Below, one piece after another: positions 1 to 64,000 of a stretch of DNA of 64,000 nt (within the stretch, counting starts at the first letter, position 1; the number at the start of each line of letters is the position of its first letter). The notes under the pieces are model-generated. The model saw only the letters and a list, made by a program, of their open reading frames with translations, was not told the origin of the DNA and did no database searches. Source of the stretch: Octopus sinensis (Eukaryota); NCBI RefSeq assembly GCF_006345805.1, contig NC_042997.1:140864001-140928000 (forward strand), given 5' to 3'. Made by a program: the position numbers and the translations under genes.

Positions 1-3000
1 AAGATTTCGGTCATTTGTCATTGCCTCTGTGAGGCCCAACACTCAGTTCATACTAATATTACATATACCAAAGTAATGGTTTGGCACAATCATTAGAGCC
101 TTGCAAGAAATACCTTGCAGTATTTTTACTGTTTTTTTTCTTTCTTTCTACAGTCTGAAGTTCAAATCATGATAATGTCAACTTTGTCATTTGTCTCTCC
201 AGGGTCTATCGACTAAAGTACCAGTCAACTTCTGGGGCATTGATTTAAATGACTAACCCCCACTTTTGAATTTTATTTCACCCCTTGTGCTTATCTTAGA
301 GACTATTATTACATTATCATCCACCAGCATTGGCCACTTTGCCTCTGTGAGGCCCATTATTAATATACCTACTATTTTGCTTTTACTTATACCAATATTG
401 TACTCTAACTTATACCAACTCTTCTATAACATATCAAAGGCACAATCACAACTCTATAACTTATACCTACTATGATAATATAATTTATACCAAGCATAAT
501 GCTGTGATTTTTCTGAATCATGGCAGTAAAATTTATAAATATAGAATACTGTAATTTATATAAACCTTTTTAATACTTATGTGATCTGTAGTACTGTAAC
601 TTATATTAACCATTGTAAAAGCTCTGTTGTCATTCACATGAGAATATCCTTTGGCAACATGCACCATTTGTTTTTCTTTTTAACCCTTTAGCATTCAGAT
701 TATCTTATAAAATGTAACATTTATTTATTCACATTGTTTTGAATTTATCTTGCTTTATCATGTAGCTGTGAGATTACAAGTATGTGACTGTATATTTTTT
801 AGACTGACATTGTGGGATAGATGTTAAATGCCTGATCTGGCCAGTTTGAACATCAAACAGAAGAATATTTTGGTTGGATGGGGCTTGTTTAAATACTAAA
901 GGGTGAAATCCCTCACTCCCAATGGAGCATTGGCCATAAACAATTTTTGTCTCCTGTTCACAATTCTGGGCTGTCTTTTCTGCTTCCCTTAGTAAATGAT
1001 TTCCTTTCCTGATCTTTGTTTTGAATTGTCATCAATGTGTCTGCTCTTCACAAACCTATTTTTACTACTTGGAACCATGGTCTATATCAGTCTGGCCTCT
1101 ATCCTTGACCTGTCCAGCACAAGATGCCCTACTAGGAGCTTGCACTCTGTTAGCATAGCTCTCAGGTGTATTGAGGCATACAGGCCACCACATCACAATG
1201 AAGACTAGACCTTGTGGTGGTAGCATGCACCATGTTTTCACTAATTGTTTTTGGTGTCTATGTACTTACATGCCGATATCGACATCCTCTTGGTTCCCTT
1301 CCCACCCTTGACACAGTGGAACATCCAGGTGATTTATATAGCATAATAAATGGTGTAACCCAGATGCTGTTATTGTAATATTTGTCTTTGTGGTGTTCTA
1401 GTATGACCTAAACTGTAATAAGAGCTTAAATGTTTCAAAGAAGGGTCAAGGATACAGAACTTAAATGTTTCAAAGAATTATTAAACCTTTCATTATTGTA
1501 TTGCTTATTTCTTTATTGCCCACAAGGGGCCAAACATAGAGGGGACAAACATGACAGACAAATGGATTAAGTCGATTACATCGACCCCAGTGTGTAACTG
1601 GTACTTAATTTATTGACCCCAAAAGGATGAAAGGCAAAGTCGACCTCGGCGGAATTTGAACTCAGAACGTAAGTAAAGACGGACGAAAGCCCGTTAAGCA
1701 TTTCGCCCGGCGATCTAACGTTTCTGCCAGCTCGATTTCTGTTGAAATAAATTGCCTTTGTTTCAAATAATTTTGAAAATAACAAAGAATTTAATGTAGC
1801 TGTTAAGCTGCTGCAAGGCAGCAAGCTGGCAGAATCATTAGCACACTGGGCAAAATGTCTAGCAGCATTTCCTCTGACTTTACATTCTGAGAGTTCAAAT
1901 TCTGCTGAAGTCAGCTTTGCTATTCATCCTCTTGGGGACAATAAATTAAGTACCAGTTAAGCACTGGCAGCCATGTAATTGACTTGCTCCCCCCTCACAA
2001 ATTTCAGGCCCTGTGTCTTTACTAGAAAGGATCATTAAGCTGCTGTATGATGGCAAACATACGGAATCAATGGTGTGTTTGACAAAAAAGCTTAGGCAGC
2101 ATTTCTTCATGCTCTTTACACTCTAAGTTCAAATTCCACTGAAATATCAATTGAACCCTGAGATTCATCGTTGCTGTCACTGCCGTCGCTGTTGTTGTCA
2201 TTGTCTAGTGTTTTAAATCTTGGTTTTGTCCCTGTTAACGGGGGTGGCTAGATCTACCTCAATGCCATAGCAACCAAGGTTGGCAGGTGCAGCCCACTCC
2301 AACCTTTGGGCTGGCTGGTACCCATTCTGCCTTGCTATCATGAGGCATTTTTAGAGCTGGATTTTCTATGGGGAGCATGCCGTTGCTTACATCCAACCTC
2401 AGTTTCTAGACATGAGTGGTCCTGAGACTATGATTTTTAAGAAATGGAAAACTAGCTCAGGAAGGCAGGGATGCTACTCCCTGAGACCCCTTTTGGAGCT
2501 CTCCTATCCCACTCCTTTCTGACGTGGTACCAAACTATGAAGCTGTTATGTTTTGAACATAAATTAGCATGAAATTTTGATGGAAGGTTTTAATTTACAT
2601 CCTTTTAGAAGAGAATGTTTGTATCATAGAACCAAAGGCTATCTCAAGCAGATTGGTAATGGAAGGGTTAACCCTTTAGCATTTAAAATGGCCACATCTA
2701 GCCAAAATATTCTGCCAGTTTTAGGTTTAAACTAGCCATATCCAGCCTCTCATGACTACCCTACCATGTCATTCTAAAAATATACAATCACAGCATTGAA
2801 ATCTTGAAGCTACAAGATAATATATGATTAATTTAAAATAATGGGAATAAATAAGCATTACATTTGGTAGAATAATCTGAATCATCAAGAGAATTGAAGA
2901 AGCACATTTCTTTAAAATTAAATTCTTCAATTGACCAACTGTGTTGTTGATGTATGATGTATGACAAAAGAGAAAAAAAAAAAATTTGATATTGTTAAGC

Positions 3001-9110: not shown

Positions 9111-9199
9111 GTAAGTGACTTACTCTATTAACATTCAAATGACACTCATACTAATCCTTCAGGTGGTGTGAAGCACTCATGGCAGTGCCACGTGAAAGC

Positions 9200-9980
9200 A
9201 CCCATGTGGTGCCATGTAAAAGTGCCTGTGCAGTGCCATGTAAAAATGCCTGCGTAGTGCCATGTAAAAATGCCTGCGTGGTTCCATGTAAAAATGCCTG
9301 CGTGGTGCCATGTAAAAATGCCTGCGTGGTGCCATGTAAAAATGCCTGCGTGTTTCCATGTAAAAATGCCTGCGTGTTTCCATGTAAAAATGTCTGCGTG
9401 TTTCCATGTAAAAATGCCTGCGTGGTGCCATGTAAAAATGCCTGCGTGGTGCCATGTAAAAATGCCTGCGTGGTGCCATGTAAAAATGCCTGCGTGGTTC
9501 CATGTAAAAATGCCTGCGTGGTGCCATGTAAAAATGCCTGCATGGTGCCATGTAAAAATGCCTGCATGGTGCCATGTAAAAATGCCTGCGTGGTGCCATG
9601 TAAAAATGCCTGCGTAGTGCCATGTAAAAATGCCTGCATGGTGCCATGTAAAAATGTCTGCGTGTTTCCATGTAAAAATGCCTGCGTGGTGCCATGTAAA
9701 AATGACCATGTGGTATCACATAAGAGTGCCCATGTGGTACCATAAAAAAGCGCATGTGCAGTGTGACATAAAAGCTCCCATGTGGCGCCATGTAAAAGCA
9801 CTCATGTGGTGCCATGTAAAAGCATCCATGTTATGCCACTGAAAAGCACCCATGTGGTACCACACAAAAGTGACCATATAAAAGTACCACATAAAAGCAC
9901 CTATGCAGTGCCACATAAAAAGTGCCTCTGTTGTTCCACATAAAAGTGTCTGTGCAGTGTCACATAAAAGCACCCAGTAC
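9200..9980. repeat. 24-bp minisatellite (GTGGTGCCATGTAAAAATGCCTGC)n, about 20 well-conserved copies plus degenerate flanking units
   Basis: Direct reading; the unit resembles the family D motif. Confidence 0.92.
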
Positions 9981-20688: not shown

Positions 20689-23600
20689 CAATAGTGGTAG
20701 TAGTAGTAGTAATATTAATATTAATATTAATATTAATATTGACTTCAAATTTTGGCCCAGTGATCAACTGATACTTATATTATTGACCATGAAAGGATGA
20801 AAAGCAAAGTCAACTTTGGTCGAATTTGAACTCAGAAGACAGATGAAATGCTGATATTTGCCTGGCATGCTAATGATTCTGTCCCACTCACTGCTTTTTG
20901 CCACCTTCATAGGAGCACTCCATCGGTTATGAGGAAGAGGGTCCCAGCTGATACGATCAACGAAACAGCTTGCTCGTGAAATTAATGTGTAAGTGGCTGA
21001 CCACTTCACAGACACGTGTACCCTTAATGTAGTTCTCAGGGAGATTCAGCATGACACAGAGTGTGACAAGGCTGGCCCTTCGAAATACAGGTATTATTCA
21101 TTTTTGCCAGTTGAGTGGACTAGAGCAACGTGAAAGAAAGTGTCTTGCTCATGGACACAATGTGTCGCCAGGAATTGAACTCACGACCTTATGCTTGTGA
21201 GCCGAATGCCCTAACCACTAAGCCATGCACCTTCACAATGACAATAAGAACATTATTATTCCACCATCAACAACGCTAATATTGCTGCCATTGTTGGCTG
21301 TTTCTTATGTTAAAGGAAATATCAGCAAGAAGAAATGCCAATGATATGGATTTGTTTATAGTGGATCTAAACTTGTTAGGAAGTGACACTCACATGATGA
21401 TTTCAGGATCATTCTCTGCAGCATATATAGAATGAGACAGAGACTATCATGTGACGAAATTGTAGCAGACTGCTGTTGACATGGTTGTAGTCTTAAGCAG
21501 TGCTTTTTTTGCCAGTCCAACTGGTGTTGCCTTCCTCTGCTAGTTCAAAAGTTATTCATATCAACTGTTGTTGTTTTCAACATTCACACTCTGCTGTTTG
21601 GTCTTGAAGCAAGTTTGGTTTGGTAATATTTGACCTTAATGGCAGGGTGGTGGTGGTGGTGGCTGACAACTTTGTTTTCAGACTCACTGGATTATGCAAG
21701 CTCTTCACCATGTGTCAAGAAGTGACCATCAGAGGGACTCATTTGATAGAAAAAGGATATAACTTCTATGCATGTTGTAAGGGAAGTACGATGTAAGCAG
21801 AATTACTCCAAAGAAACCACAGAAAGTTTAGAAAAATATTTTTCTTCTTAATTATAGGGAATCATCATCATCATCATCATCATTATCATCATTATCACCA
21901 AAACTTTAGCTTACATGTCATATTACACACATACTGGCACTTCGTCAGTTATGACGAGGGTTCCAATTGATCTGATCAACGGAACAGCCTGCTTATGAAA
22001 TTAACGTGCAAGTGGTTGAGTACTACAGAAACACACGTACTTTTAATGTAGTTCATAAGGAGATTCAGCGTGACACAGAATGTGACAAGACTGGGCCTTT
22101 GATATAGAGGTACAACTCACTTTTTTGCCAGCTGAGTGGACTGGACAAACATGAAATAAAGTGTATTGCCCAAGGACACAGCGCACTGCCAGGAATCAAA
22201 CTCGCAACCTTGCAATCATGTGCATATATGCACATGCTTATATATGTGATGGGATGTGTGTCTATGTCGCTGTAAGGTTCTGTAAGAGCGAATGGTTGAA
22301 GCAAATTCTTGAGAAAATAGCTATGTAGGTGCAGGCATGGCTGTGTAGTTAAGAATCTCGCTTTGCAATCTTGTGGCTACGGATTCAATCCCACTCTGCG
22401 GTTCATTGCGAAAATGTCTTCTGCTATAGCTTCGAGTTGACCAAAGCCTTGCGAGTGAATTTGGTAGATGGAAACTATAGGAACACATTGTGTGCATGAG
22501 TGTGTGTGTGTGTGTGTGTTTTCCCACCACCACTTGACAAATAGTGCTGGTTCATGTACATCTCCGTAACCTAGCAGTTCAGCAAAAGAACTTGACAGAA
22601 TAAGTACCAGCCTTTAAAATAAGGGGTTGGTTTGTTCAACTAATATCTCAGTATGGCTATAGCCTAATGACTGAAAAGAAAGTTAAAAAAAAAACATGTT
22701 CGATTAATGTGAGTTTGAATTTTTGGAAGTGATCAGAACTAAGGAGTCACGCTATATTCTGTAAAATGTTAGCAAAAGTCCAGGAATCGAAATCACAATC
22801 CTGCGATCATGAGTCTAAAACTCTAACCACTAAGCCATGAGCCTCCACTAGCAAAAGCATTTGCTAACCAGAATCTTTTCCTCTCACCGTTACCAACTCT
22901 CTCTCTCTCTCTCTCTCTATCCCCCTCTCTTTATCTCATGCGTACACGTAATGTGCGTACATTCACCCATTAACACATCAAGTTCCTCTTTCCTTTGTGA
23001 CACAAGCAGACCATTGTTATATATTGCCACTCCTTCAATAACTTTGAAATAGAAGAACATCAACCATCGGCAGATCTTTGTTTCAAGTGGATTGGAAGTT
23101 TCCTGTTTTAATAAATGAGGTCACGTTGTTATTGCTGTCCTTGTTCTTGTCATTTACGTTGTTGATGTTTTGTTCCAGTTGTTAATTGATTATTAAAAAA
23201 AAAAAAATTATTCAGAGAAAATGATGTGATTTTTTTTTTCTTCTTTTCCTGGTAATATAATAGTCAGCCGGGCAGGCTGGCGAGCTGGCAGAAACGTTAG
23301 CACGCCGGGCGAAATGCGTAGCCGTATTTCGTCTGCCGTTACATTCTGAGTTCACATTCCGCCGAGGTCGACTTTGCCTTTCATCCTTTTGGAGTAGATT
23401 AAATAAACACCAGTTACGCACTGGGGTCGATATAATCGACTTAATCCTTTTGTCTGTCCTTGTTTGTCCACTCTATGTTTAGCCCCTTGTGGGTAGTAAA
23501 GAAATAGGTGTTTCGTCTGCTGTTGCGTTCTGAGTTCAAGCTCCACTGAGGTCGACTTTGCCTTTCATCCTTTCGGGGTCGATAAATTAAGTACCAGTTA

Positions 23601-43443: not shown

Positions 43444-43569
43444 TACTTACATACACATATAGATTTACACACACATAAATACACATGAATTTATGTTTGT
43501 GCATGTAGTTGTCTATTCATGGATTGTACTGGTAAGTTATTTTCAAACGGCATACATAAAACATATATA

Positions 43570-43887
43570 TACATAGATACAAGCACATACATACATACAT
43601 ACATACATACATACATACATACATACATACATACATACATACGATACATACATACATACATACATACATACATACATACATACATACGTACGTACGTACA
43701 TACATACATACTACATACATACATACATACATACATACATACATAATACATACATACATACATACATACATACATACATACATACATACATACATACATA
43801 CATACGTACGTACGTACGACATACATACATACATACATATATACATACATACATACATATATACTAATACATACATACATACATACA

Positions 43888-43919
<32 letters not shown>

Positions 43920-44137
43920 GTACATACATACATACATACATACATACATCATACATACACATACATACATACATATATACATACATATACATACATACAT
44001 ACATAATACATATATACATACATACATACATACATACATACATACATAATACATACATACATACATACATACATACATACATACATACATACATACATAC
44101 ATACATACATACATACATACGTACGTACATACATACA

Positions 44138-44171
<34 letters not shown>

Positions 44172-44181
44172 CATACATACA

Positions 44182-44215
<34 letters not shown>

Positions 44216-44249
44216 CATACATACATACATACATACATACATACATACA

Positions 44250-44283
<34 letters not shown>

Positions 44284-44366
44284 CATACATACATACATAC
44301 ATACATACATAACATACATACATACATACATACATACATACATACATACATACATACATACATACA

Positions 44367-44400
<34 letters not shown>

Positions 44401-44540
44401 CATACATACATACATACATACATACATACATACATACATACATACATACATACATACATACATACATACATACATACATACATACATACATACATACATA
44501 CATACATACATACATACATACATACATACATACATACAGA
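43570..44540. repeat. (TACA)n microsatellite of about 1 kb
   Basis: Direct reading; source of the MYVC artefact ORFs. Confidence 0.97.
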
Positions 44541-45840
44541 CAGACATACATATATACATATATATGCATGCACACACGCATATATTTATATACATAGATA
44601 TAGATATATATAAATACATATATATATATACATATATATACACACATAATATATATATAGCTATAAATTACATATATACGCACATATATATGAAAATGTA
44701 TGTATGTGTGTGCATGCGTATGCGTTTGTGTGGTAGAATACACTTGTGCATCACGTAAACTGAAAATAAGATAAAACTTAGAAATGGAGATAGATAGATA
44801 GATAGAGAGAGAGGGAGGGAGAGTGTGTGTGTGAGAGAGAAGAGATGGCCGAACTAGAGGCCCTATAGGATGATAGCAACAACAACAATAATAACAACAA
44901 CAGCAACAACGCTGACTTGCTCATGATACACAGGTACTCTGCGTAAATACAGTCCAACGACTTAAACGAGTTATGCGCCTCTGCATTTTATTTTCGAGAT
45001 AAATTCCAAGAAACACCAGGAACAAAATCTTATTTCAAAATTGATTTTTATAACTACCTATGGTGTCATTTACAGTGAGTTCTCTTTAAGCCATGTACTT
45101 ATTACCGTATAGGGAATGCATGCGAACCACTATGATCATTATGATCACATCCTTATAAGGCGGCGAGCTGGCAGAATCATTAACACGCCGGTCAAAATGC
45201 TTAGTGGCATTTCACCCATCTTTACGTTCTGCGTTCAAACTCTACCGAGGTCGACTTTGCATTTTATCCTTTCGGGGTCGATAAAATTGGTACCAATTGA
45301 ACACTGGAATCGATGTAATCGACTTACTTCATCTCTCGAAAATGCTGGCCTTCTGCCAAAATTTGATGCCATTATGATCACCTCCTTTACAGTTGGTTAA
45401 TATTTTATAATTAAAGATAGCAATGAATGGATGATCAGTTCTCATGGCTTTAGTGGGTGGTGATATCCAACTCTTTCATACTGACGTTAGAGGAGTAAAT
45501 AAAATTGCTTTGCGAATCGAACCTAGGTCACATTAGACTTTGTGCAACAGCTTATTATTTCCTACGCCATGGCCATTGTCACATATAACTCTATGTAACA
45601 CCTCCATAACCAGAGGAAGTTCTACAGGGTCATATGGCCATCTCCAGCCCTGCAGCTTCATGTAAATATAATTATCATCTAACATTTATTTCAATTTTAC
45701 GCTTTTTGCAAATTAGATGGATAATAGTGGATTCATTTTGATGAACGAGAATCCCATCCTTGCTTAGAATCCTGGCTACGGCCATATAAAACGGTATTAG
45801 ATTGCAGAACGCCAAATATATTGGGTATTCTACAATATAT

Positions 45841-49882: not shown

Positions 49883-49982
49883 NNNNNNNNNNNNNNNNNN
49901 NNNNNNNNNNNNNNNNNNNNNNNNNNNNNNNNNNNNNNNNNNNNNNNNNNNNNNNNNNNNNNNNNNNNNNNNNNNNNNNNNN
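49883..49982. other. Assembly gap (100 N)
   Basis: Run of exactly 100 N, so it is probably a gap of arbitrary size. Confidence 0.99.
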
Positions 49983-50646: not shown

Positions 50647-50784
50647 TTATATATATATATTAATATGTGAATATGTGTGAGTGTTTATATGTAAGCAAAG
50701 TACACGGTGTATGATATGTTGAAAATGTTCATCAAACGATATCCCTAAATGAATGTGATGTATGAACGAAAACCAACTTTATTG

Positions 50785-51060
50785 TCAAGGAGCGCTTGTT
50801 ACCGCGTGGCCATACCGATCAACACATAATGTGCTACCAATGTCCAGGTTGTATTGACATGTGTTGTAGCCGAGATTGAAATTCATTGAGCAACTGTTAC
50901 CCATACCACAGGCCCTCTTGTGACACGGTGGATCTGGCAAGCAGACACCATGCTGGCAGCTTCCATCTGGACAGCCGAAATGGCAATGTATTTTCGGGTA
51001 GCATATTCGGTGGTAGGCACAATATTCGTGGGGACAGCATCCTTCTGCACATGTCCGATA
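50785..51060 (-). CDS. Terminal exon of a cysteine-rich small protein (14 Cys in 91 aa): YRTCAEGCCPHEYCAYHRICYPKIHCHFGCPDGSCQHGVCLPDPPCHKRACGMGNSCSMNFNLGYNTCQYNLDIGSTLCVDRYGHAVTSAP*
   Basis: tttctctctttgcAG acceptor, non-repetitive GC-richer sequence, regular Cys spacing, TGA followed almost immediately by AATAAA. Confidence 0.8.
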   Translation of the reverse strand, partial: YRTCAEGCCPHEYCAYHRICYPKIHCHFGCPDGSCQHGVCLPDPPCHKRACGMGNSCSMNFNLGYNTCQYNLDIGSTLCVDRYGHAVTSAP

Positions 51061-51297
51061 CTGCAAAGAGAGAAATATGAAATAAAAGTTTTAGTTGATA
51101 TTACATTAAAAAGAAAATATAAAAGTAAAACGAAGATACAGTATTTACATATTACACCCATCTCTCATCTACGATAAGGCTAGTAATTTAGTGCTGTCGA
51201 CAGTTGTCAAAATTTAATGATAGTTGCCAGTAAACCAATTTTATTCCTGCTGCGGAGTAAAGATCGTATTTCTTCAAAATTATGTCAGAATCAATTG

Positions 51298-51370
51298 TGT
51301 TCTGTTGTGTAGTGGTTATCACGTCTACCTCACACGCAGAAAGTCTTGAGTTCGAGCCTCACCAGAACCT
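51298..51370 (+). tRNA. tRNA-Val(CAC), probably a pseudogene
   Basis: 73-nt cloverleaf: D arm GTGTAGTGGTTATCAC, anticodon loop CTCACAC, T loop TTCGAGC. One mismatch each in the acceptor, anticodon and T stems; no T4+ terminator directly downstream. Confidence 0.75.
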
Positions 51371-51419
51371 GTGCTAACTGTTTCTGTAATGCATTTGAGC
51401 ACTATATTCAGTATACCTA

Positions 51420-52297
51420 TTGTTATATTTATTTCTTTATTGCCCACAGTAGGCTAAACGTAGAGAGAACAGACATAACAGTTTCTTATTTAATCAGTGC
51501 ATAACAGTTTTTTATTTAATCGACCCCGAAAGGATGAAAGGCAAAGTCGACCTCGGCGGAATTTGAACTCAGAACGTAACGGTAGATAAAATACCTATTT
51601 CTTTACTACTCACAAGGGGCTAAACACAGAGGGGACAAACAAGGACAGACAAACGGATTAAGTCGATTATGTCGACCCCAGTGCGTAACTGGTACTTAAT
51701 TTATCGATCCCGAAAGGATGAAAGGCAAAGTCGACCTCGGCGGAATTTGAACTTAGAACGTAACGACAGACGAAATACCGCAAAGCATTTCGCCCGGCGT
51801 GCTAATGATTCTGCCAGCTTGCCGCCCTCCTATTGTTATTATATCACATTAAGATGGTTTTATTGGCAGAATCGTTCGTACGTCGGTCAAAATTCTTAGC
51901 GGTATTTCTACCGGCTTTACGTTCTGATTTCAAATGCAGTCGTGGTCGACTTTGCCTTTCGCCCTTTCGGAATGAATAAAATAAATTTTGGGGTCATTGT
52001 AATCGACGTGCACCCGCCACTTCAAATCTACCGGCTTTGTGCCAAAATTAGAAAGAGTTATTATTATATTTATTTTTTTATTGCCCACAGGGGGATAAAC
52101 ATAGAGAAGACAAACAAGGACAGACAAAGGGCTTAAGTCGATTACATAGAATCGACCCCAGGGCATAACTGGTACTTATTTAATCGACCCTGAAAGGCAA
52201 AGTCGACCTCGGAGGAATTTGAACTCAGAACGTAACGGCAGACGAAATACCTCTCAGCATTTCACCCGACGCGCTAACGATTCTGCCAGCTCGCCGC
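51420..52297 (-). mobile_element. Tandem cluster of family B SINE copies in the intron of the Cys-rich gene
   Basis: Repeated AAAGGCAAAGTCGACCTCGG blocks on the + strand near 51535, 51720 and 52192, plus an oppositely oriented fragment near 51885-52060. Confidence 0.8.
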
Positions 52298-52657
52298 ACT
52301 ATTATTATATTATATTATCAAAGAAAGGTATTTCGAGGCAATTTCATTTGTGAATAAGTAGATATGCGATTATTTAAAGTTTTCATTTCCACCTTAGAAG
52401 AGACTAATTACTTGGGAATCGGAGCCGAATCCATCGCTATATGGTTACGAACGAGATTTGAACATATGCGCAGAAGTTTGGTAAGAAGCTTGCTTCCCAA
52501 CCACATAGTTCCAGGTTCAGTCCCACTGCGTGGCCCCTTGGGCAATTGTCTTCTACTACAGTTTCGGGCCGACCAAAGCCTTGTGAGTGGATTTGGTTGA
52601 CGAAAACTGAAAGAAGCTCGTGGTATATATGTGTATGTTCATGTATATGTATATATA

Positions 52658-52697
<40 letters not shown>

Positions 52698-52711
52698 TTA
52701 TTTATATAAAG

Positions 52712-52755
<44 letters not shown>

Positions 52756-52835
52756 GCAACTGTCTTCTACTAAAGTTTCGGGCCGACAAAAGCATTGTGA
52801 CTGGATTTGGTTGACAAAAACTGAAAGCAGCTCGT

Positions 52836-52876
<41 letters not shown>

Positions 52877-53591
52877 TTATATATATATATATGTATGTGT
52901 GTCATTGTGTTTTTTTCTCCATCGCCGCTTGACAACCGGTGTTGTGTGTTTACGTCCCTGTAACTTAGCATTCGGCAAAAGAGACCGATAGAATGTATAA
53001 GGCTTAAAAAAAGTACTGGAGTCGATTAATTCGGAATTCATTTGTAACGTCACTGGTGCCAACCTGTATCGGCCTTTGCCTTTCCCTTGGATAACATCTG
53101 TGGTATGGATAGGAGATGGTGGTATGCATGGGCAACTGCTGGCATTCCATAAATAACCTTGCTCGGACATGTGTCTTGCGGGGTAACTTTCTAGGTGTAA
53201 TCCCATGGTCATTCATGACCGAAGGGGGTCTTTTGTTTACAAACATACACACACGTATGTGTATATGCGTGTGTGTGTGTGCGTATGTGTATGTTTGCGT
53301 GTGTACTTGTGTCTGTGTTTGTTCTCTCACTGTTTGACAACCGGTGTTAGTTTGTTTACGTCCACGTAACTCAGTAGTTCGCCAAAGAGAGGGATATTTA
53401 AAAAATATAAGTATTAGGTCGATCCGTTCGACTAAAACCCTTCAAAGCAGTGCCCCAGTATGGCCACAGACAATGACTGAAACAAATAAAAAATAAAAGA
53501 TTAGAAATAAATTAAAAAAACCCCAAATTTTCTGCTTATAATACAGAAATCAATAATTTATCCAAAGTTTTGTGATTTCAACTTCACTTAC

Positions 53592-53685
53592 ATCAATAAT
53601 AGTCTGGAGGGATAAAACGACAAAAAAAGCATAAATATTACAAATTGCATCATTCCAATTGTCCAAAAATTGTTAGTTTGCACGT
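53592..53685 (-). CDS. Candidate start/signal-peptide exon of the Cys-rich gene (ATG at 53653; MMQFVIFML...)
   Basis: ttcttttcttttatttatatAG acceptor, GTAAGT donor, hydrophobic N-terminus. Ends in phase 2 as assembled; one extra base in the A7 run (53622-53628) gives phase 0 and MMQFVIFMLFFVVLSLQTIID. Confidence 0.5.
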
Positions 53686-55847
53686 CTATATAAATAAAAG
53701 AAAGAAAGATTCTTTAAAGGTGTTGAGAATATTTGGAAGTTGAACGACCTCACCGTGAGAGAATATTCCATGATTGCACAATAAATGTGTGATGAATAAG
53801 GATGAAGTGGAAGGGTCTAGGGTGAAGACTAAAAAGAAAAAAATTAATAAAATCTAAACAAAATGAAAGTCCTAGTGTGGCCGATTCTAGCATGTGAACT
53901 GGCGTTGACTACGATAATATAATAAAGTTATTGAAATACAATAATTCCTGAGACTCATTAAAGACCATTCATAACTTAGTATGAAATTAACATCCCACAC
54001 CCATCACGTTTTACTGAAGTGTCACTAATAAAGTATTGTTTGTGGAGGTGCTGTTGCGGTTGTTATTCTCGCTAATGTTGCAGTTGTTAGGAACTTTGTA
54101 GCCGTTAGCATTGTTTGTATCTTCGATATAAACTTTTTTGCTGTTGTTATAGTTGTTACCATTATTATTTTTTTTTATTATTGCACGCAACTCTTTCTGT
54201 TTCCCCGACCCGCACGTCTTAATCCGCTTTTTTACAGTCGGCAAATTGACAGAGTCATTAGAGCGTCGGACAGATTGCTTTGCGATAATCGTTTCGGATA
54301 TTCATGCCTTGAATTCAAATCTTACCAAGACCAACTTTGCTTTTGATCTTCTCGGGATTAATAAATATATCAAACATGTTCTAGAGTCGATTCTTCTGTT
54401 CCATGGTTATCTGACTATTTTTCTTTCCTTTCTAGAAAAAATGAGCAATGGTCAGCCCAGAAAACGGTCTAGCTCCGCTAGTTTTAAATGTCCCAGACAT
54501 TCCGTATATCATAACGATGCTCCTATGATTCCATCAATAAGTTGAGAGTCCAAAATGAGGCCTTTCTTTTCACATGACACAAACCGCGGTTATTTCTCTT
54601 AAAGTGTAAGCGGTTCACATCTGGCCATTACCAGTATGTAGTGAATACGACCGACACATTTAAACTTTAGACAGCTCAATAGACACATCTGTTAACAGGT
54701 GACACGCAAAGGAAAATTTTGACTACAGAAAACAGTGGAAGCACCGGTATTTTGACAGATCCCCAGTACCGAGGTCGGTTCCTCGTGTACATTGAAGAAA
54801 CGATAGGTTACGATAACAAACAGGTTTCTATTTTCAATTTTCATCTCAAACTTAAAATGAAGTCGCGTGGCCTAGTGGTTAGAGTGTTGCATTCACGATC
54901 GTGCTTTCGATTCCCAGACCGGGCGACTCGTTGTGTTCTTGAGCAAAATCCTTCTTTTCAGGTTGTTGCAATCCACTTAACTGTAAATGAATTATCCCGA
55001 AACAGACTGGCGTCCTCTCCAGGAGGGATGTTACAATCTCTATCACTTGTATGTCATGGAAACTGGCCCTTTGAGTCCTAAGACTCGAGACAGTACTACT
55101 TAGTATCCTAAACTTGTTATATTTGTTATATTTTGATATTAGAAAGGTGTACTTAAATCTGAGAAACCCATATTGAGTGACTACACAGACGGTAGAAATG
55201 TGGGGTCCTATCTGTTATTATCTGTTTTCAGTTCTTGTGCACCAGTGTCATAACCAACACAGCCAACATATTAGGTACTGGAATGCTGTTGTTTGTTCCT
55301 TCTCAAGCCATACCTTGCTTATAATGTCCCAGACATTCCGTATATCATAACGATGCTCCTATGATTCCATCAATAAGTTGAGAGTCCAAAACGAGGCCTT
55401 TCTTTTCACATGACATAAACCGCGGTTTATACCTTGCTTATAAGGGCAGGTTTCCAGGTTTCATTGGCGTATAGGTTCCCCACCTGGACGGGATTCCAGT
55501 CTGTCACAGGTGAGCTGCTAGGTGCAGGAGGAAAGAGTGAGAGAAAGTTGTGGCGAAAAAGTCAGCAGAAGTTCGCCATTACCTTCTACCGGAGCCGCGT
55601 GGAGCTTAGGTGTTTCGCTCATAAACACACACATCGCCCGGCCTGAGATTCGAACCCGCGGCTCTAACCACTAGGCCATGTCTCCACCAGGTATAGGAAT
55701 AAGACCCCGTGATTATTTCATTCGTTACTTAGATTACTATAGGCCATTCCGATAAGGTAGTTATCCGCCCCTGACTAGAACTCTCCCATATGTAACCTGC
55801 TTCTACATCTGCGGACTACCAACTCACAGGCTGTATGACCGGTTAAT

Positions 55848-56096
55848 ATGATGTCTCCGAAGAAATCGCGCAAATACTGTTGTAAATGCAGCAATTATAG
55901 AGGGACGAATGTAGACGGCAAAGTTATCTCACTTCATAGATACCCTGCAAACGTCGCTATTCGTCGCATTTGGCTTTAGAGATCGAGACTTGCGAGGAAA
56001 GACTTTGTTTACACTGCAAACAGTCAGATTTGCTCCCAGCATTTTGTCAATTCTAATGGACTATCGACAGATCACCCCTTGCCATCCGTTTATTAG
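55848..56096 (+). pseudogene. THAP domain fragment (transposase N-terminus) with an in-frame stop
   Basis: MMSPKKSRKYCCKCSNY..ISLHRYP..RRIWL*..QICSQHFV..PLPSVY shows the C2CH, P, W and F signature; TAG at 55977-55979. Confidence 0.8.
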
Positions 56097-56284
56097 ATAA
56101 AGTTCAGAGATATGTGTATGTGACTGTGCATTTGTATTTGATAAATATGATAGGGATAAAAAATTTATTCAAAATTAAGCCTAATTTATTTATTATTTAT
56201 TGTTTTAATCATACTTCTATTTACTTACATCCATAAAAAATACAATTTATTATACAAGGGAAAAAAGTCAAAATAATTAGACTT

Positions 56285-56640
56285 TTCTCTGCAATCGGCT
56301 GAATGCATATTGCCAGTGACCTTTGACACTCTGTGATCAGGATTGTTCTTTTTGTTAGATGTTGGGTAGTGACGGGATTACCAGACACCGGACAATGCAG
56401 TGAGAGTAGTTTTTGGTAACATCCGTAATATTCAATGTTGTGGACGTGTCTGTCATGGTAAAATATGTTACTCCTTAACCGTCGCTTTGCCTTCCTCCGT
56501 AGCACGAGGTAGTTGTAAACGTTATCATCCGTAAAATTCGATATCTTATGAAGATCTTTAATCCAATCTGATTTCAGCACATTGGGATCAGGTAAAACTT
56601 CACCGAGGGGAGATACAAGTTTCTGCTTATTCCGGTATGA
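56285..56640 (-). pseudogene. Frameshifted fragment of a transposon-associated SWIM-type protein
   Basis: KLVSPLGEVLPDPNVLKSDWIKDL..VYNYLV, then after frameshifts HCIVRCLVIPS...KVTGNMHSADC, the start of a SWIM CxC. Confidence 0.65.
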
Positions 56641-57489
56641 AGTTCACTTCTCGTCTCTTGATTTTATTTCATTGACGTTCTTTATCGAAAGAATTTTAAT
56701 ACCTTTTAACCTTTCAACCAAATCCGCCTTTTTTTCTTGTAATATACTGTCCATGTAATCGCAAATAATTCTTTGAGTCGACCTGCTTAATATTCATGAT
56801 ATGACGTGATACACAACAACAGTGGCGTGGGTAATTTGCGGAAGTAGAATTGTTTGCACGGAGAGCCACCTAACCAAGGGAGATAATCTACTTATCGGAA
56901 TGTGTCTCCACCAGGTATAGGAATAATACATCGTTATTATTTCTTTCGTTACTTAGATTACTCTAGTGGCCACTCTGATATCTCAGACGCTAGCAAAACG
57001 AACGACTCTATACTTTGTTTATTAATTTATTTTATTCCTTGTTTAGGTCTGTCTTTCATGGACCCTCGGAGTCATAAGGCAAGAGATTCACTCAGTTTCC
57101 ATGGTGTATAAGTGACTGAGATTACAGCACCATCCCTCCAACCACTGAACGGGACGACACAGGGTGATCTTCTCAGTTATTCATGGAAACAACGTAAAAT
57201 GAAGTGTTTTGCGACACGAGCACAAAGCATCGCCCGGGCTGGAAATTGAAACTACGATCGTTCGACCGCAAGTACAACATCCCTAAGCACTAGACTACGG
57301 CCCTTCACTTTTATGCTCTAATTTATTTCCTTGGTTAGGTAACTTTATTTAGACAAATTGTTTTACTTCCGAACTTTTGCATTTATTAGCAAATTATTTG
57401 AATATTAAGCACGTAACTCAATTTTATTCAATAAGTTGTGTGTGTGTGTGTATATGTGCATGTGTATATCTGTGTGTGTATACATATAA

Positions 57490-57528
<39 letters not shown>

Positions 57529-57959
57529 CTATAGGTTATGTCAAAAGTGAAATCTTGCTTCAAGTCTATACAGGCTCATGAAGCCAGAATTTATCCGAAA
57601 TTTCAAAGAGTAAAGTCAGAGTACAAGCTTTTACCCCAGTGTTAACCTTCAGGCGTCTTCGATACTTATTTTTAGCTGAGTTGTATTGGACTAACGCGAA
57701 ATAGTGTCTCGTTCAATGATACAACGCTCAATGCAGTCCGATCATCGAATTCACGATCAAACTATAATCATCAGGTAGCACGCACTTCCTCAAATCAAAA
57801 TAATTTTACACACACCACACACACACACAAACGAACTGTCATAATATCTAGAAAACAACATTCTTCTCCAATATACCTGTCTCATCCAGAATCATAGGTA
57901 TTGTAAGAAGTTTTTATTTTCCTGATATTAGTAGTATAAAATATATACAAATACTGACC

Positions 57960-58300
57960 ACAAAGTTGAAATAAAAACAAAACAACAAAAAATTCTTCGT
58001 TCTTTAACTTTTTGATTAATATTGTATCAATTCTTCTGAACATGTAAATAGAATTGTAAGAAGAGCGATGCAGATAAAATTTATTTCTCGTCTCAATAAT
58101 TTTTCTTTTCATTTAATCCTCTTATCAACAATTTTTTCCACCAGATACACCCGCGAGTTCCATTATTCTCCCATACAGTTTTTTCCTTTTTTTTTTCCAA
58201 TCCTCTTTTCCTTTACATCCCTAAGCAATTTCTTTCATAATTCACTTCAAATATCGCCCACTAACGTTTCTTTGATAAAATCTCACTCCATGCCCATGTC
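57960..58300 (-). mobile_element. Decayed Penelope GIY-YIG end fragment
   Basis: Remnant FY.....YMFRRIDTILIKKLK resembles the Penelope C-terminus. Confidence 0.4.
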
Positions 58301-58485
58301 TATCTATGAACACAAGTGCAACAAATTAACTATTTTATCAAGTCAAGCAACAAGACTTGACATTTAACCCTTGCTTTTCATTTGAAACCGAGGCTTCTGT
58401 ATTGGCTCCCAACAGCTTTAAAATATATCTCGCCTCTTTCTTATAACCTAACTGTAGAACTTGTCTCGGTTTTTATTATATTAGT

Positions 58486-58521
<36 letters not shown>

Positions 58522-59144
58522 ACACACACATTCTTGAAGTTTCCTTTTTTCCATATTTGCATTCTATATTTTTTCTGTTTTTCTTTCTTTCTCTCTAACT
58601 TTTATTTCTTTTTTTATAATTTTTTTCTCTGCTTTGACGCACAAGAACTAAAATGAAGTAGAAAAAGAATAAAAAAAAACCCAACGTATTCTATAGCATG
58701 CTCATATCCATATGTGCATGGAGACACACATGCAGTCAGACATACATGCATACATGCAAGACTTTTCTCAAGTTTAAAACGTGAATTTGCTTTTGTTATC
58801 TACATACCAGTGATGAAGTTTTTCATCTTTGCTCGAAACTAGCTCCTCCTTTACAGGAAGATTTCAAATAATTAAAAAATGAAGGGAACATACATACATA
58901 TATATCCATAAATACACACGCATATATACTTACGCATTCACACACACACACACACGTACACACACATATACATACAAATACGTAGATGCATATATACATA
59001 CACATACGTATGATCTTGTTTAAGCAAGTGAAAATGTATTCAACACATGTTATACGGTATGTATTCATTACAAATTAGTTGATGTAAACACACCTCTATG
59101 TGTGCACCAAATTCTAATTAGCAACGAAGTCAGTCAACACATAC

Positions 59145-59455
<311 letters not shown>

Positions 59456-60012
59456 TAAGCAGTATCGGCCTTTGTCTTTCTTTTGCATAACATCGGTGGC
59501 ATGGCGTGGAGAGGGGAGGCTGGTATGCATGGACGATTACTGGTCTTCCATAAACAATCTTGCCCGGACTTGTGTCTCGGAGAGGAACTTTCTAGATGCA
59601 ATCCTATGGTCATTCATGACCGAAGAGAGTCTTTACTTTATTTTTAACTCTAGATATGGGTCTCTGGTGTTGTTAAATTTTCTTCATAGAAGTCCAAATT
59701 TCTTCATAGAATCCCCTTCCTGTGGGTGGAGGACTTTTTCAGGATAAGCACTGCGGGTGTTTGAGCAATCAGAGGTTTTGTCCTTTGCTTTTAACGATTG
59801 TGGATATGTAGTAGTAGGACTGGAAGGGTAGTGAGAAGCAATCTGTGAGAAATGTTGATGAGAATTTGTAGTGTAGATTTGAAAGCGAAGCGGTTTCGTA
59901 CATATAGACGATTTCTCTACAGGTGGGATGTTAACGGAACAGGTGTAGCTCTCAACAACAGCAGCGTTCATACACTTCCATCACAATCAGTTATATACAT
60001 ATACATACATAC

Positions 60013-60064
<52 letters not shown>

Positions 60065-60182
60065 ACACACACACACATATATATAGTTAATCCAAACAAG
60101 AAAACACAGAAAAAAACACAGCAACGCGAGGACGTGGAACAATTAAAGTATTATTTGACGTCCAGGAAAGAAGGGAAGGAGG

Positions 60183-60217
60183 GTTTAACGTTTCGAGCGG
60201 AGCTCTTCGTCGGAAAC
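60183..60217 (-). ncRNA. Hammerhead-like motif, U4C variant with an extra A after A9
   Basis: GTTT-CCGACGA-A-GAG CTCCG CTC-GAAA-CGT-T-AAAC. Palindromic AACGTT stem III, within a Penelope LTR-like stretch. Confidence 0.55.
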
Positions 60218-61877
60218 AAAGGAGAAGGAAAGATCCCGAGAAGGGAAGACAGAGGAAAAAAAATTTTTTGCTGGTGGTGCTCAAGAGATCACATATATAT
60301 ATAAATGCATATACATACATGCATATGTACATACATGCATGCATACTTACATACATACATGCATACATACATATATACATATAGACACAGGCCGACAGAA
60401 CAAATTTTATCAGTTGGTTTATATTCCGAAATGTATCAACTGAAGAAGGTCTTGCGTAAGGGATGTATTCCCTATTATATATTGCACAATACTCTGAAAA
60501 GTACGTATTCAGCGCTTTCAAAATATTAACAGGGTTAACGATAATACCCACAGGAATCTCTGTCATAGCCAAAAAAAATTTTTTAATAAAAGAAAAGCAA
60601 ATTCCCCTCTCTCTCTTGAGATGCCATGCACAAAGGCGTCGACAATCATAAACTTTTATGCATAGTGTAAGGTCTCCTTAACCCTTGGGCAGACGGACTG
60701 GTTCGGGTGTCATCAGGTCATGTCCACAGACCAGTGTGCTTATCCAACACGTCTAGGGATCAGTCCTTAGTACTTGACCGGTACTGTCACACCGGGCCAG
60801 AGTAGTCATGAAGATAGTGGGAATGTAAGAGGTAAGTTTTGAACTCTTGGTGGTGCCTCATTACTTAGTTTAATCCGTTGTCCAGGACAACCGCCAACTC
60901 AAGAATTCAATAAGGGAACTTTTATGCAGTTTTTCAACCTGCTAGAAATACTAGCCGAATATTTCTCATCGTACAGTCTCCCATCTTAAGAGAAGGTAGG
61001 ACACATTATAAGATACAGTCATCGATACAATAGATCTAAATGAAAGTTGCGATGGTCACGACCGGAGTACTCTTTGAACTAGGGTTTGCTGGATTAGGGC
61101 TGACTTGAGGCTATACAAAGCAGCAACTCTGCCAACACTAACGCTAACACAACAGGCAACCAATTTCATCACCACCACGACTACCACCACCACCACCACC
61201 ATCACGACCACGACCACGACCACGACACGACGACCACGACGACCACGACCACGACCATGACCACGACGACCACCACCACCACCACTACCACGCTGCCGCT
61301 GCCGCCGCCGACATCACAGCGATGATGAAAAACATCACCGCCGCCGCCACCGCCACCATCACCACATAATAAAAACAACACCAACAGCAGCAGCAGCAGC
61401 AACAAGATCAACAACATATACAATACACATACTATTACCACTGTTGTTACGATGATCGTCTCGAAAGTGAAAGATGAAATCTGTCCAGAAGTAAGGAACA
61501 CAAACAAGTGTTGCAAAATACGTGGTAAACTTATTATATAGCCTACGGCTGCAGAGAGAAGGAAAGCTTGTCAATAGATGTCCTCCGCTTGGTTAGGTGG
61601 AGGTTACAGACGAGACGGAGAAAATTTGAATCCATAGATATAGCTAAGGTATAACGTGTACAGTGAGATGTGTGAGATGGCAATGGAAAGTCGCCAGATT
61701 TTATGGTATGCTGTTGGGTTGTTGGATGGCAATGTTAGTGAAACAAGATGGGAAAGTATACGGAGAGGAGAAATTCTAAGGAAAAAAATATGAATAGATG
61801 GAGTTGGCAGGTTTTCTATCGAAATGTACGCCCGTGATTGCTGTTGTTGTTGGTGTTGTTGTTGACGATGATCTCCC

Positions 61878-61939
61878 CCTTCTTCTTCTTCTTCTTCTTC
61901 TTCTTCTTCTTCTTCTTCTTCTCCCTTCTTCTTCTTCCC

Positions 61940-61985
<46 letters not shown>

Positions 61986-62318
61986 TTCTTCCTTCTTCTT
62001 CCCCTTCTTCTGCTTCTTCTTCTTCTCTTCTTTCTTCTTCTTCTCCATCTTCTTCTTCTATTCTTCTCTTCTTCTTCTCTTCTTCTTCTTCTTCTCTTCT
62101 CTTCTTCTTCTTCTTCTTCTTTCTCTTCTTCTTCTTATCTTCTTCTTCTTCTTCTTCTTCTTCATCTTTCTTCTTCTTCTTCTTCTTCTTCTCCTCCTTC
62201 TTCTTCTTCTTCTTCTCTTCTTCTTCTTCTTCTTCTTCTCCATCTTCTTCTTCTTCTTCTTCTTCTTCTTCTTCTTCTTCTCTTCTTCTTCTTCTTCTTC
62301 TTCTTCTTCTTCTTCTTC
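61878..62318. repeat. (CTT)n polypyrimidine microsatellite
   Basis: Direct reading. Confidence 0.95.
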
Positions 62319-64000
62319 CAGGGTGATGGATTGGCAGAATCGTTTGTCTGTCCTTGTTTGTCCTCTCTGTGTTTAGCCTCTTGTGGGTAGTAAAGAAATA
62401 GGTATTTTGTTAGTCTTTACGTTGTGTGTTCAAATTCCGCCAAGGTCGACTTCATTCTTTCGGGGTTGGTAAATTAGGTTTCAGTTCAGTACTGGGGTTG
62501 ATGTAATCGACTAGCCCCCTCCACCCAAATTTGAGGCCTTGTGCCTGTAATAGAAAAAGATTATTATTATTATTGAGTGAGAGAGTAGCGCATGCCATCA
62601 AACTGATGCTGAGGTATAAATATACGAAGCCCAGTATACTTATTATTACTACCCGTCTGATAAGGGTAGCCAGGTGAATTATTCAAACCCCAAAGACATC
62701 CTCTCAATACATGGTTATGATACTCCCCCACTACTTCAGTTCGTTTAGCCTTCAATTTAAGCTCTACAAGTTGTAACAGATTCTCAACCAGAGACGTGAA
62801 GGGAAAAATGTTGTATCTAAAGATGTAAACAGGTGAGATACCTCGCAATTGAGAAACTGATGTCCATGTACTATTCCTTTATTGTTTTACTTATCACCCG
62901 GTCTGAGATTCGAACCCGCGATCCCTCGATTGCGAGTCCGCTGCTCTAACCACTAGGCCATGTGTCCCCACAATCTTGTCTATTAACTGTGTCTTATTCT
63001 CAAAGAACTATGAATCTTAGTACATGGTCTTCTGTGTTTCCTTCCTCAGCTGTTGCTGGAGTTGTCATTAATGTATCAGCTGTTCTCTTTCTGTGGACTA
63101 AGGTTTACTCTCTATTCAAGCTACATCTCAAGAACTTCCAGGAGACTCTCTGCACTACCAAATAATGTTGTTTTCTATATATGCTTTATTTTCAATTTTA
63201 TTCCTATCTTTTCCAACCATTTAAAAATTTCTTTGCTTACTTTACTCTGGGCACCAACAATTATTGACACAATTTATACAACTTTTTCATCGACCACAGA
63301 ATTTTGATTTTTATCCCCAGAGCTTCATATCGTGTCAGTTTTTCTCATTTCCCGACGATTTTACCGTGCACAGGACAAGCGATGTCTATGATCAGACAGG
63401 CAAGCGAAGTTTTATTATTCTTGTAAAGAAATAACAAGGTGAAACTAACTTATCAAAAACATTAATGTCGAATGCGAACTCATATCCTTTGTAAAATATA
63501 TATTACTGAAAACGTCTAAAACTTGATTTTAGAAAGCACAAAAACAAACAAATCAAAACCAAATCTAAAATTAATGTCTGTCTTTCCATTTTTCATATTT
63601 CGTTAGAAGACTGCGAAGAGATGTAACACGTTATGCTATCTCGATATGGCGGCAGCCATTAGCAAAGGTCATTGCTGATGTGAAGAAACTCTCGTAACAA
63701 GTGACAATAATGACAGGTGAAGAGTGAAATGTTTAGAGACAGAGAAAAATATTGGGGTTAAAAAATCACATTCTTATGCTATATAAATAATCTAAAAAGT
63801 ACAAAATAAAGTTTGTAGAAATATTCACCACAGTGAAGTGTTTTTACAGATACATTGCTACCGAATATCAACGTCCACATAGACAACTCATCAAATTTAA
63901 CTCCAGCATTGCATACACTCTATCGATATCGACAAGACAGCACTGCAATATAGAGAAGCTCTTGGAATGTATTTCTTTGCTTTTTAATTAACCAGCAAGT

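Follow-up and report, generated by a model that had tools for sequence, protein, structure and literature searches.

The octopus DNA analysed here, a stretch of 64 kb that we call the window, raises the question of whether a Cys-rich reading frame on its minus strand belongs to a gene that is broken by a single base. The original prediction placed the first exon in a short hydrophobic reading frame at 53653..53592 and took the gene to be one base out of frame in the A7/T7 run within it; the causes considered were an error in the assembly, a 3n+1 microexon that had been missed, and a genuine on/off allele prone to slippage. We found that the sequence elements themselves are all present at the positions given for them: the 14-Cys modules, the stop, the AATAAA and the strong acceptor on one side, and the upstream ATG with its hydrophobic ORF, the GTAAGT donor, the A7 run and the out-of-phase junction on the other. 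Taken as a whole, the explanation is very probably a different one, namely that the octopod gene annotated as LOC106870289 has its second and final coding exon, which is intact, at 51060..50785 (Table 1).

Table 1. Positions of the features discussed in the text.
Feature	Position	Strand	Description
AATAAA hexamer	50778..50783	minus	two bases past the stop; possible poly(A) signal, on weak evidence
Last coding exon	50785..51060	minus	91 codons and TGA; translation YRTCAEGCC...AVTSAP, then stop
3′ splice site	51061..51080	minus	polypyrimidine tract and CAG acceptor, phase 0, directly before the Tyr codon
3′-most 12.9 kb of the very long first intron	51061..64000	minus	from the octopod gene ranges and the absence of the exon-1 peptide
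Candidate exon 1 of the original prediction	53592..53653	minus	62-nt ATG-initiated hydrophobic ORF with a GTAAGT donor at its end
A7 homopolymer (T7 on the gene strand)	53622..53628	plus	inside the 53653..53592 ORF; outside the coding sequence of the gene

The exon encodes the whole mature protein (YRTC...TSAP), with its 14 Cys arranged as C-x3-CC-x4-C-x5-C, C-x3-C-x4-C-x4-C and C-x4-C-x5-C-x10-C-x10-C. Directly ahead of it stands the sequence ctctctttgcag, with the acceptor AG at 51062-51061 and the junction cag/TAT at 51061/51060. The residues translated from 51060..50788 are 100% identical to residues 26-116 of the Octopus vulgaris protein CAI9716057.1, 100% identical to O. bimaculoides XP_014771797.1 (the product of LOC106870289) and 99% identical to Argonauta hians GAB1597507.1, and the exon ends at the same stop as the three octopod proteins. 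The exon in the window is the orthologue of the last exon of the annotated octopod proteins, or that very exon. These models, which are named only "uncharacterized" or "hypothetical", differ from the window in having an extra signal-peptide exon, which is absent from it. The Cys-rich exon occurs once in the 64 kb, with no tandem paralogues in the window.

Relatives of the protein were found across Mollusca, with 26 family matches at E ≤ 0.001 among 1.84 billion representatives at 50% identity and 52 among 5.8 billion clusters. The named members come from molluscs (chitons, gastropods, bivalves and cephalopods) and from the annelid Paralvinella, and all of them are called "uncharacterized" or "hypothetical". 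UniProt carries automatic labels on single orthologues, which read "Chitin-binding type-2", "Chitin-binding type-1" and "EGF-like domain-containing".

Across Mollusca, bivalves, chitons and limpets included, the orthologues are 54-68% identical to the octopus protein, and all 14 Cys, each of which is present in the window exon, are kept in every aligned relative that covers those columns. With this degree of identity and of Cys retention, the Cys-rich exon is real and lies far above chance expectation. The C-terminal motif NLGYxTCQYNL(D/E)IG is likewise present, with invariant or near-invariant columns at N62, L63, G64, Y65, C68, Q69, Y70, L72, I74 and G75. Like the octopus exon, the loci of the chiton Liolophura (LOC135481959), Babylonia (LOC143285441), Crassostrea virginica (LOC111118254), Lottia (LOTGIDRAFT_174113), Biomphalaria (LOC106057161) and Paralvinella (LSH36_10g14053) carry all 14 Cys together with NLGYxTCQYNLxIG. 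Some lineages depart from this plan outside the Cys core: heterobranchs have a low-complexity linker of 60-150 aa between Cys8 and Cys9, and the annelid and some other relatives have a polybasic site and a tail past Cys14 that the octopus protein is without. The family consists of small, deeply conserved secreted proteins of Mollusca and at least one annelid, with no characterised member. Literature searches by locus and accession identifiers or by sequence motifs found no paper on it; the protein is already annotated in octopods and conserved across molluscs, but it is unstudied.

The architecture of the gene is conserved together with the protein. The mollusc and annelid relatives with 14 Cys have two coding exons separated by a phase-0 intron ahead of the Tyr, and their first exon ends in Arg. 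At the window exon and at the Liolophura and Babylonia loci this intron stands right ahead of the Tyr, the first residue of the mature part, and in the latter two the signal exon ends in ...KR or ...RR, followed by the intron and then by YRYC. Arg precedes the Tyr in every spliced or transcript-derived model of the family, and three RNA-seq runs gave transcript contigs that carry the join ...SLSKR-YKYC without interruption. At least 11 relatives whose sequences were called as ORFs instead have a Q ahead of Y(R/K)xC, which is the acceptor codon CAG read through. The difference is in the length of the intron, which is 5-18 kb in the chiton and in Babylonia and 150-300 kb in octopods.

The models of O. 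vulgaris, O. bimaculoides and Argonauta hians share one signal-peptide exon that differs from the ORF of the original prediction, with MWTTSKLTLFILIGAALFFSASTMR followed by YRTC; its peptide ends in ...STMR and is joined in phase 0 directly before Tyr-Arg. The genes span 287 kb in O. vulgaris, 303.5 kb in O. bimaculoides and 151 kb in Argonauta. The annotated models show that exon 1 encodes the signal peptide alone and lies 150-300 kb upstream, beyond the window; searches of the window for its peptide, with exact 8-mers in six frames and with permissive tblastn, returned chance or SINE-derived matches only, which places the exon outside the window. Introns of hundreds of kilobases are normal in octopus genomes, so the true first exon may lie well beyond the edges of a window of 64 kb. 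The models of the three octopods may depend on one another, since the name of the Argonauta entry derives from the O. bimaculoides locus and the O. vulgaris annotation may have used that locus as evidence; the members of the sequence cluster of the octopod protein are all genome-annotation entries.

The ORF at 53653..53592 is of a common kind. Each of the four GTAAGT sites on the minus strand in the 12.9 kb upstream of the exon is preceded by an ATG-initiated ORF of at least 12 codons, and the two strands of the window together hold 11 candidates that combine a signal-peptide-like ATG-ORF with a donor (about 6-7 of them distinct); the ORF is therefore not beyond chance. Runs of A or T of at least 7 bases number 69 in the window. 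The ORF is 62 nt long and leads into phase 2, whereas the Cys frame requires phase 0, and the unaltered junction 53592/51060 gives a product of 79 aa with a single Cys. Inspection by eye for GT/AG alternatives that would reconcile the ORF with the Cys frame, with no base changed, found none in the right phase. As a candidate for exon 1 the ORF was rejected, being in the wrong phase, without a terminal Arg and used in none of the three octopod models. We judge the ORF and its A7 run to be chance intronic sequence that is not part of the coding sequence.

The ORF might still serve as a minor alternative first exon, transcribed from an internal promoter into a non-productive or non-coding transcript beside the main mRNA with its far-upstream exon. 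Cryptic promoters are often present in long introns, the donor is good and a TATA-like TTTATATAG lies about 40 nt upstream of the ATG. Motifs of this kind are frequent, however, in sequence of 36% GC, and the 79-aa product has no known relative; such an exon is very improbable. Hardly credible at all is the gene that starts at 53653..53592 and is one base out of frame: a hydrophobic ATG-initiated start with a consensus GTAAGT 2.5 kb from a strong acceptor, the sole signal-like N-terminus among the donor-linked ORFs of the upstream 12.9 kb (a microsatellite-coded ORF aside) and at least one assembly gap nearby speak for it, but the phase is wrong as the sequence stands, the gene models of three octopods start from a different exon, for which no repair is needed, the junction lacks the Arg of every spliced relative, the product has no positively charged n-region, and hydrophobic ORFs arise in more than one frame of this T-rich intron. 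In the intact two-exon gene there is no frameshift. Since the octopod models use another first exon, with a phase-0 join and an Arg before the Tyr, an assembly error, a microexon and slippage are all unnecessary; the ORF that holds the A7 run is unused in these three models and their annotated coding sequence is intact. The apparent frameshift arises when the terminal exon, which is real, is paired with the nearest plausible ATG and donor, those of an ORF that lies upstream by chance, and neither assembly correction nor phase-variation biology is called for.

The expectation that automated annotation would mispredict the gene is supported for some relatives. Their 5′ ends are mispredicted, with the Littorina model reading through the acceptor (...FPQ-YRYC) and the Lottia model beginning with an N-terminus unlike a signal peptide. 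The value that remains to the locus is modest but real, as the exon marks an uncharacterised family with 54-68% identity from chitons to octopods and with an annelid member too, and the pattern of conservation suggests a constrained extracellular function.

The proposal of an uncharacterised, secreted and disulfide-rich protein was borne out. The octopus exon has no Pfam match at E up to 10, and a Pfam scan of 19 aligned and 10 further members of the family gave nothing above threshold, with E-values of at least 0.14 for EGF-like, TNFR-CRD, follistatin and Dickkopf modules. Searches of PDB sequences with the single sequence and with a profile returned nothing meaningful. A first AlphaFold model, which included the signal peptide and drew on 8 sequences, reached a poor pLDDT of 67, and its Foldseek search was uninformative; a second reached pLDDT 81 with three hairpin pairs, and Foldseek found no fold match for it (best E = 1.4, TM at most 0.26). 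Removal of the signal peptide would leave a product of about 92 aa with a basic N-terminus, (M)R-YRTC..., in which the 14 conserved Cys are predicted to pair into seven disulfides, bracing three beta-hairpin modules. The N-terminal part (Cys1-8) and the C-terminal part (Cys9-14) may be separable units, because heterobranch snails hold their linker between them, and the most conserved surface motif, NLGYxTCQYNL(D/E)IG, would lie on the C-terminal part. The polybasic site found in some lineages just past the last Cys is of convertase type and would trim the C-terminal extension. Successive disulfide-braced beta-hairpins such as those predicted here are likewise found in EGF-like domains (Pfs25/28), TNFR cysteine-rich domains (HVEM), follistatin and Dickkopf N-domains, which top the Foldseek and Pfam listings at non-significant scores; their defining Cys patterns are not matched and the likeness is a general one.

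What such a protein does is suggested by the way it has changed. Octopus and Argonauta differ at 1 of 91 positions of the mature part and at 7 of 25 of the signal exon, and venom-peptide superfamilies typically show the reverse, a conserved signal and a variable mature peptide, as established for conotoxins. Conservation that is so much stronger in the mature part than in the signal peptide speaks against a venom toxin and for a constrained ligand or binding protein. We infer tentatively, and with rather less than even confidence, that the protein is a constrained extracellular ligand or binding protein, resembling a hormone, growth factor or antagonist, and that it serves neither as a venom or antimicrobial agent nor as part of the shell matrix. 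More speculatively, the protein could act as an orphan signalling ligand outside the cell, of hormone or growth-factor type, or as an antagonist; its near-invariant NLGYxTCQYNLxIG hairpin would then be the receptor-binding epitope, and its gene in octopods would lie behind a regulatory intron of 150-300 kb.

The toxin, defence or matrix roles named in the original prediction fared less well. A component of the extracellular matrix, chitin-binding or involved in biomineralisation, is unlikely: matrix proteins often contain hairpin modules in tandem that are braced by disulfides, and the automatic UniProt labels point to chitin-binding or EGF-like domains, but the three labels disagree from one orthologue to another and none of the 19 and 10 members scanned matched a Pfam model for chitin-binding or EGF domains. 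The protein is moreover fully conserved in shell-less octopods, and it is a single small protein without repeats or low-complexity regions of the shell-matrix type, the heterobranch linker excepted. A knottin-type peptide with a venom, defence or antimicrobial role is decidedly unlikely. The protein is small, secreted and very Cys-rich, and it shares the C...CC...C...C spacing of its first module with ICK/knottin toxins such as Toxin_23 (PF08093). In two divergent relatives this module reaches 21.9 and 19.6 bits against the Toxin_23 profile; both scores are under the curated cut-off of 22.2 bits, however, and the octopus protein and 8 other tested members have no match. A 27-residue Foldseek overlap with a spider knottin (E = 4.3) is likewise non-significant. 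Knottins form one knot of 6-8 Cys as against 14 Cys in three modules here, and they evolve in the opposite pattern to the nearly invariant mature part and varying signal of this protein. Its orthologues, moreover, occur at 54-68% identity in non-venomous bivalves, chitons and limpets, and the family is small, with a single copy in the window.

Among nine other long ORFs of the window, a Pfam scan found no credible nested or neighbouring gene. The AATAAA hexamer occurs 113 times on the minus strand of the window, and oyster transcripts of the 14-Cys family continue for kilobases past the ORF. The part of the first intron that lies in the window is repeat-rich, with SINE-like copies, microsatellites and a tRNA-like element.

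The window is AT-rich and laden with repeats (GC ~30-42%), and one minus-strand exon within it translates as YRTCAEGCCPHEYCAYHRICYPKIHCHFGCPDGSCQHGVCLPDPPCHKRACGMGNSCSMNFNLGYNTCQYNLDIGSTLCVDRYGHAVTSAP followed by a stop; its 91 codons include 14 for Cys, in exactly the spacing of the original prediction. Every other sequence feature described there is likewise borne out, including the acceptor, the stop with its AATAAA, the upstream ORF, the A7 run and the clash of phase. The upstream ORF is 62 nt long (phase 2), the Cys frame requires phase 0, and the unaltered join of 53592 to 51060 yields a 79-aa product with 1 Cys.

Positions of the Cys-rich exon, the proposed first exon and neighbouring elements in the window
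Feature	Position	Strand	Remark
Cys-rich exon	51060-50785	-	
CAG acceptor with pyrimidine tract	51080-51061	-	directly before the Cys exon
AATAAA	50783-50778	-	2 bases past the stop
Proposed upstream ORF	53653 (ATG) to 53592	-	peptide MMQFVIFMLFLSFYPSRLLL, then GTAAGT
A7 run	53622-53628		inside the upstream ORF
SINE-like copies	51418-52306, 52542-52872		direct and inverted
tRNA-Val(CAC)-like element	51297-51371	+	~240 bp upstream of the Cys-exon acceptor
Tandem repeat	43491-44743	-	spurious open frames
Tandem repeat	9146-9815	both	spurious open frames
Assembly gap	49883-49982		exactly 100 N, ~0.8 kb downstream of the stop

A search of the 91 residues against 5.8 billion protein clusters returned a 100% full-length match, Octopus vulgaris CAI9716057.1 (116 aa), whose 90% cluster also holds O. 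bimaculoides XP_014771797.1 (LOC106870289, 121 aa) and Argonauta hians GAB1597507.1. All three octopod proteins start MWTT(S/R)K...(S/N)TMR and run straight into YRTCAEGCC. The peptide has no coding match anywhere in the 64-kb window, which holds 12.9 kb upstream of the Cys exon, and the gene spans 286,861 bp in O. vulgaris, 303,545 bp in O. bimaculoides and 151,489 bp in Argonauta, all in chromosome-scale assemblies; the signal-peptide exon must therefore lie far past these 12.9 kb, and 51061-64000 is the last part of an extremely long intron. By these comparisons, the Cys exon belongs to an annotated gene with another first exon than the one proposed. We regard this structural conclusion as very probable because the octopod exon 1 is conserved in two genera as an open ORF for a signal peptide that ends in the Arg common to the family, and is compatible in phase, with the proviso that the three gene models may share evidence and are then not necessarily independent.

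The same architecture was found in distant molluscs, and demonstrates a gene of two coding exons, one for the signal peptide and one for the entire mature protein. In the chiton Liolophura exon 1 ends ...AAKR and in the whelk Babylonia ...EARR, and in both exon 2 begins exactly at YRYC, across introns of ~5 and ~18 kb, respectively. The genomic codon preceding the Tyr is CAG in both, as it is in the window (...SLQ/YRTC), and at least 11 relatives with proteins called directly from genomic contigs begin ...Q-Y(R/K/P/N/D)xC, where the leading Q comes from reading through this acceptor. Arg stands right before the Tyr in all spliced or transcript-derived models (KR, RR, GR, IR or MR), and an uninterrupted oyster-type ORF reading ...SLSKR-YKYC is present in three RNA-seq assemblies from independent runs. 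The octopod junction (...STMR/YRTC) matches both the Arg pattern and the phase with no base change. In these oyster-type contigs (L003/L004) an antisense 222-aa SPRY-domain ORF (~2250-2925, minus strand) lies ~1.8 kb downstream of the family ORF, and could be an overlapping gene, a neighbouring gene or a chimeric assembly.

The proposed first exon is not more than chance. On the same strand, each of the four GTAAGT sites within the upstream 12.9 kb follows an ATG-initiated ORF of 12 codons or more, and two are already in phase 0. A strict signal-ORF filter, which required an ATG start, 15 codons or more, a hydrophobic core, the absence of early acidic residues and a GTRAG donor, retained 11 candidates on both strands of the window (~6-7 distinct) and 2 distinct ones in the upstream 12.9 kb, so that about one such ORF is expected. 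With one base added the ORF still resembles a signal peptide because two of the three frames of its T-rich sequence encode hydrophobic peptides. A/T runs of 7 bases or more number 69 in the window. The resulting junction (...IID/YRTC) has neither the right phase nor the Arg. We accordingly reject this exon, an ORF and donor of chance frequency that the octopod models do not use, and the claim of a one-base frameshift in a homopolymer is an artefact of the wrong first exon. The expected 5′ misannotation does occur in some relatives (e.g. Littorina P0004, Lottia P0065, Bulinus P0016), the octopod models being free of it.

The exon and its protein are present in public annotation (LOC106870289 and orthologues) and the feature itself is therefore already known; no member of the family is characterised, Pfam has no entry for it, and a literature search found no paper on its members. 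Little is left of the frameshift as framed, and what modest value there is lies with the protein family, which is lophotrochozoan, conserved and uncharacterised. Only 26 relatives emerged when 1.84 billion representatives were searched exhaustively by profile, and a profile search with names gave 52, the named ones coming from Polyplacophora, many Gastropoda, Bivalvia, Octopoda and the annelid Paralvinella palmiformis, all called "uncharacterized" or "hypothetical". Most relatives are 54-68% identical to the octopus protein along almost the whole mature part, the most divergent ones less so; the 14 Cys and the NLGYxTCQYNL(D/E)IG motif vary little or not at all among the aligned relatives. UniProt labels different orthologues automatically as 'Chitin-binding type-2', 'Chitin-binding type-1' or 'EGF-like domain-containing'; these conflict with each other and find no support in our Pfam scans.

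The original prediction holds as far as it called for a secreted Cys-rich peptide, and we infer that the protein is secreted and folded with seven disulfides. AlphaFold2 modelled the mature part from 19 sequences (pLDDT 81.3, pTM 0.61) as three beta-hairpin pairs (residues 12-22, 33-42, 55-70). Foldseek returned nothing significant against PDB (best E = 1.4, in a non-significant listing that mixes TNFR-CRD, EGF-like, follistatin and knottin chains), and PDB sequence searches with the octopus exon and the family profile were empty. Pfam scans of the octopus protein and relatives brought no family to threshold: two divergent relatives scored 21.9 and 19.6 bits, under the cut-off of 22.2, for Toxin_23, a 30-residue knottin family that the octopus protein and other members did not match.

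In heterobranch snails a low-complexity Ser/Thr/Pro-rich linker of 60-150 residues is inserted between Cys8 and Cys9 (P0014, P0016, P0017, P0019, P0026, P0035, P0071; heterobranch gastropods where named), which makes an N unit with 8 Cys separable from a C unit with 6. RR or KK sites occur in some of these linkers, and each half might thus be set free on its own. In the annelid and several environmental or transcriptome sequences (P0020, P0022, P0023-25, P0033, P0059, P0063), Cys14 is directly followed by a polybasic site (RRKR, KKR or RRR) and a C-terminal tail, which suggests convertase trimming; the octopus protein has no such site. The Babylonia protein (P0008) carries a ~22-aa poly-Gly/Val insertion between Cys10 and Cys11, within exon 2 (locus L002, ~20990-21050), and this loop therefore tolerates large insertions. 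P0011, a 129-aa protein from a JGI metagenome contig, has an N-terminal half resembling the N-terminal Cys module read in its +1 frame (AAVHTNFALTTRYA..., comparable with octopus frame-1 DAVPTNIVPTTEYA...) and a C-terminal half in the Cys frame; it is a frameshift in a short contig, through sequencing error or as a pseudogene.

Venom-peptide superfamilies, conotoxins among them, combine a conserved signal with a hypervariable mature peptide. The octopod protein reverses this pattern, with 7 of 25 signal-exon and 1 of 91 mature-exon residues differing between Octopus and Argonauta. Orthologues in non-venomous bivalves, chitons and limpets, full retention in shell-less octopods and a single copy within the window make a toxin, antimicrobial or shell-matrix role less likely. 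Together with the conservation pattern they favour, tentatively, an extracellular ligand or binding protein under constraint, a possible reading that also draws on the architecture.

The stretch between the Cys exon and the proposed ORF is ordinary intron content, namely SINE-like copies, microsatellites and a tRNA-like element. Several copies of the SINE-like element (ggcgagctggcagaatcgttagc...) are 64-88% alike, with further pieces elsewhere, e.g. near 4.7, 26.5, 33.8 and 46.9 kb. The tRNA-Val(CAC)-like element, intronic and antisense to the gene, scores 41 bits in Rfam, low for a working tRNA, and may be a pseudogene or SINE head. Two long tandem repeats produce open frames of 190-360 codons, some seemingly Cys-rich (at most 23 Cys in 91 residues), which we rejected as genes, their products being the periodic peptides CMYV... 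and HAGIFTW.... The assembly gap is bordered by TA/CA microsatellites.
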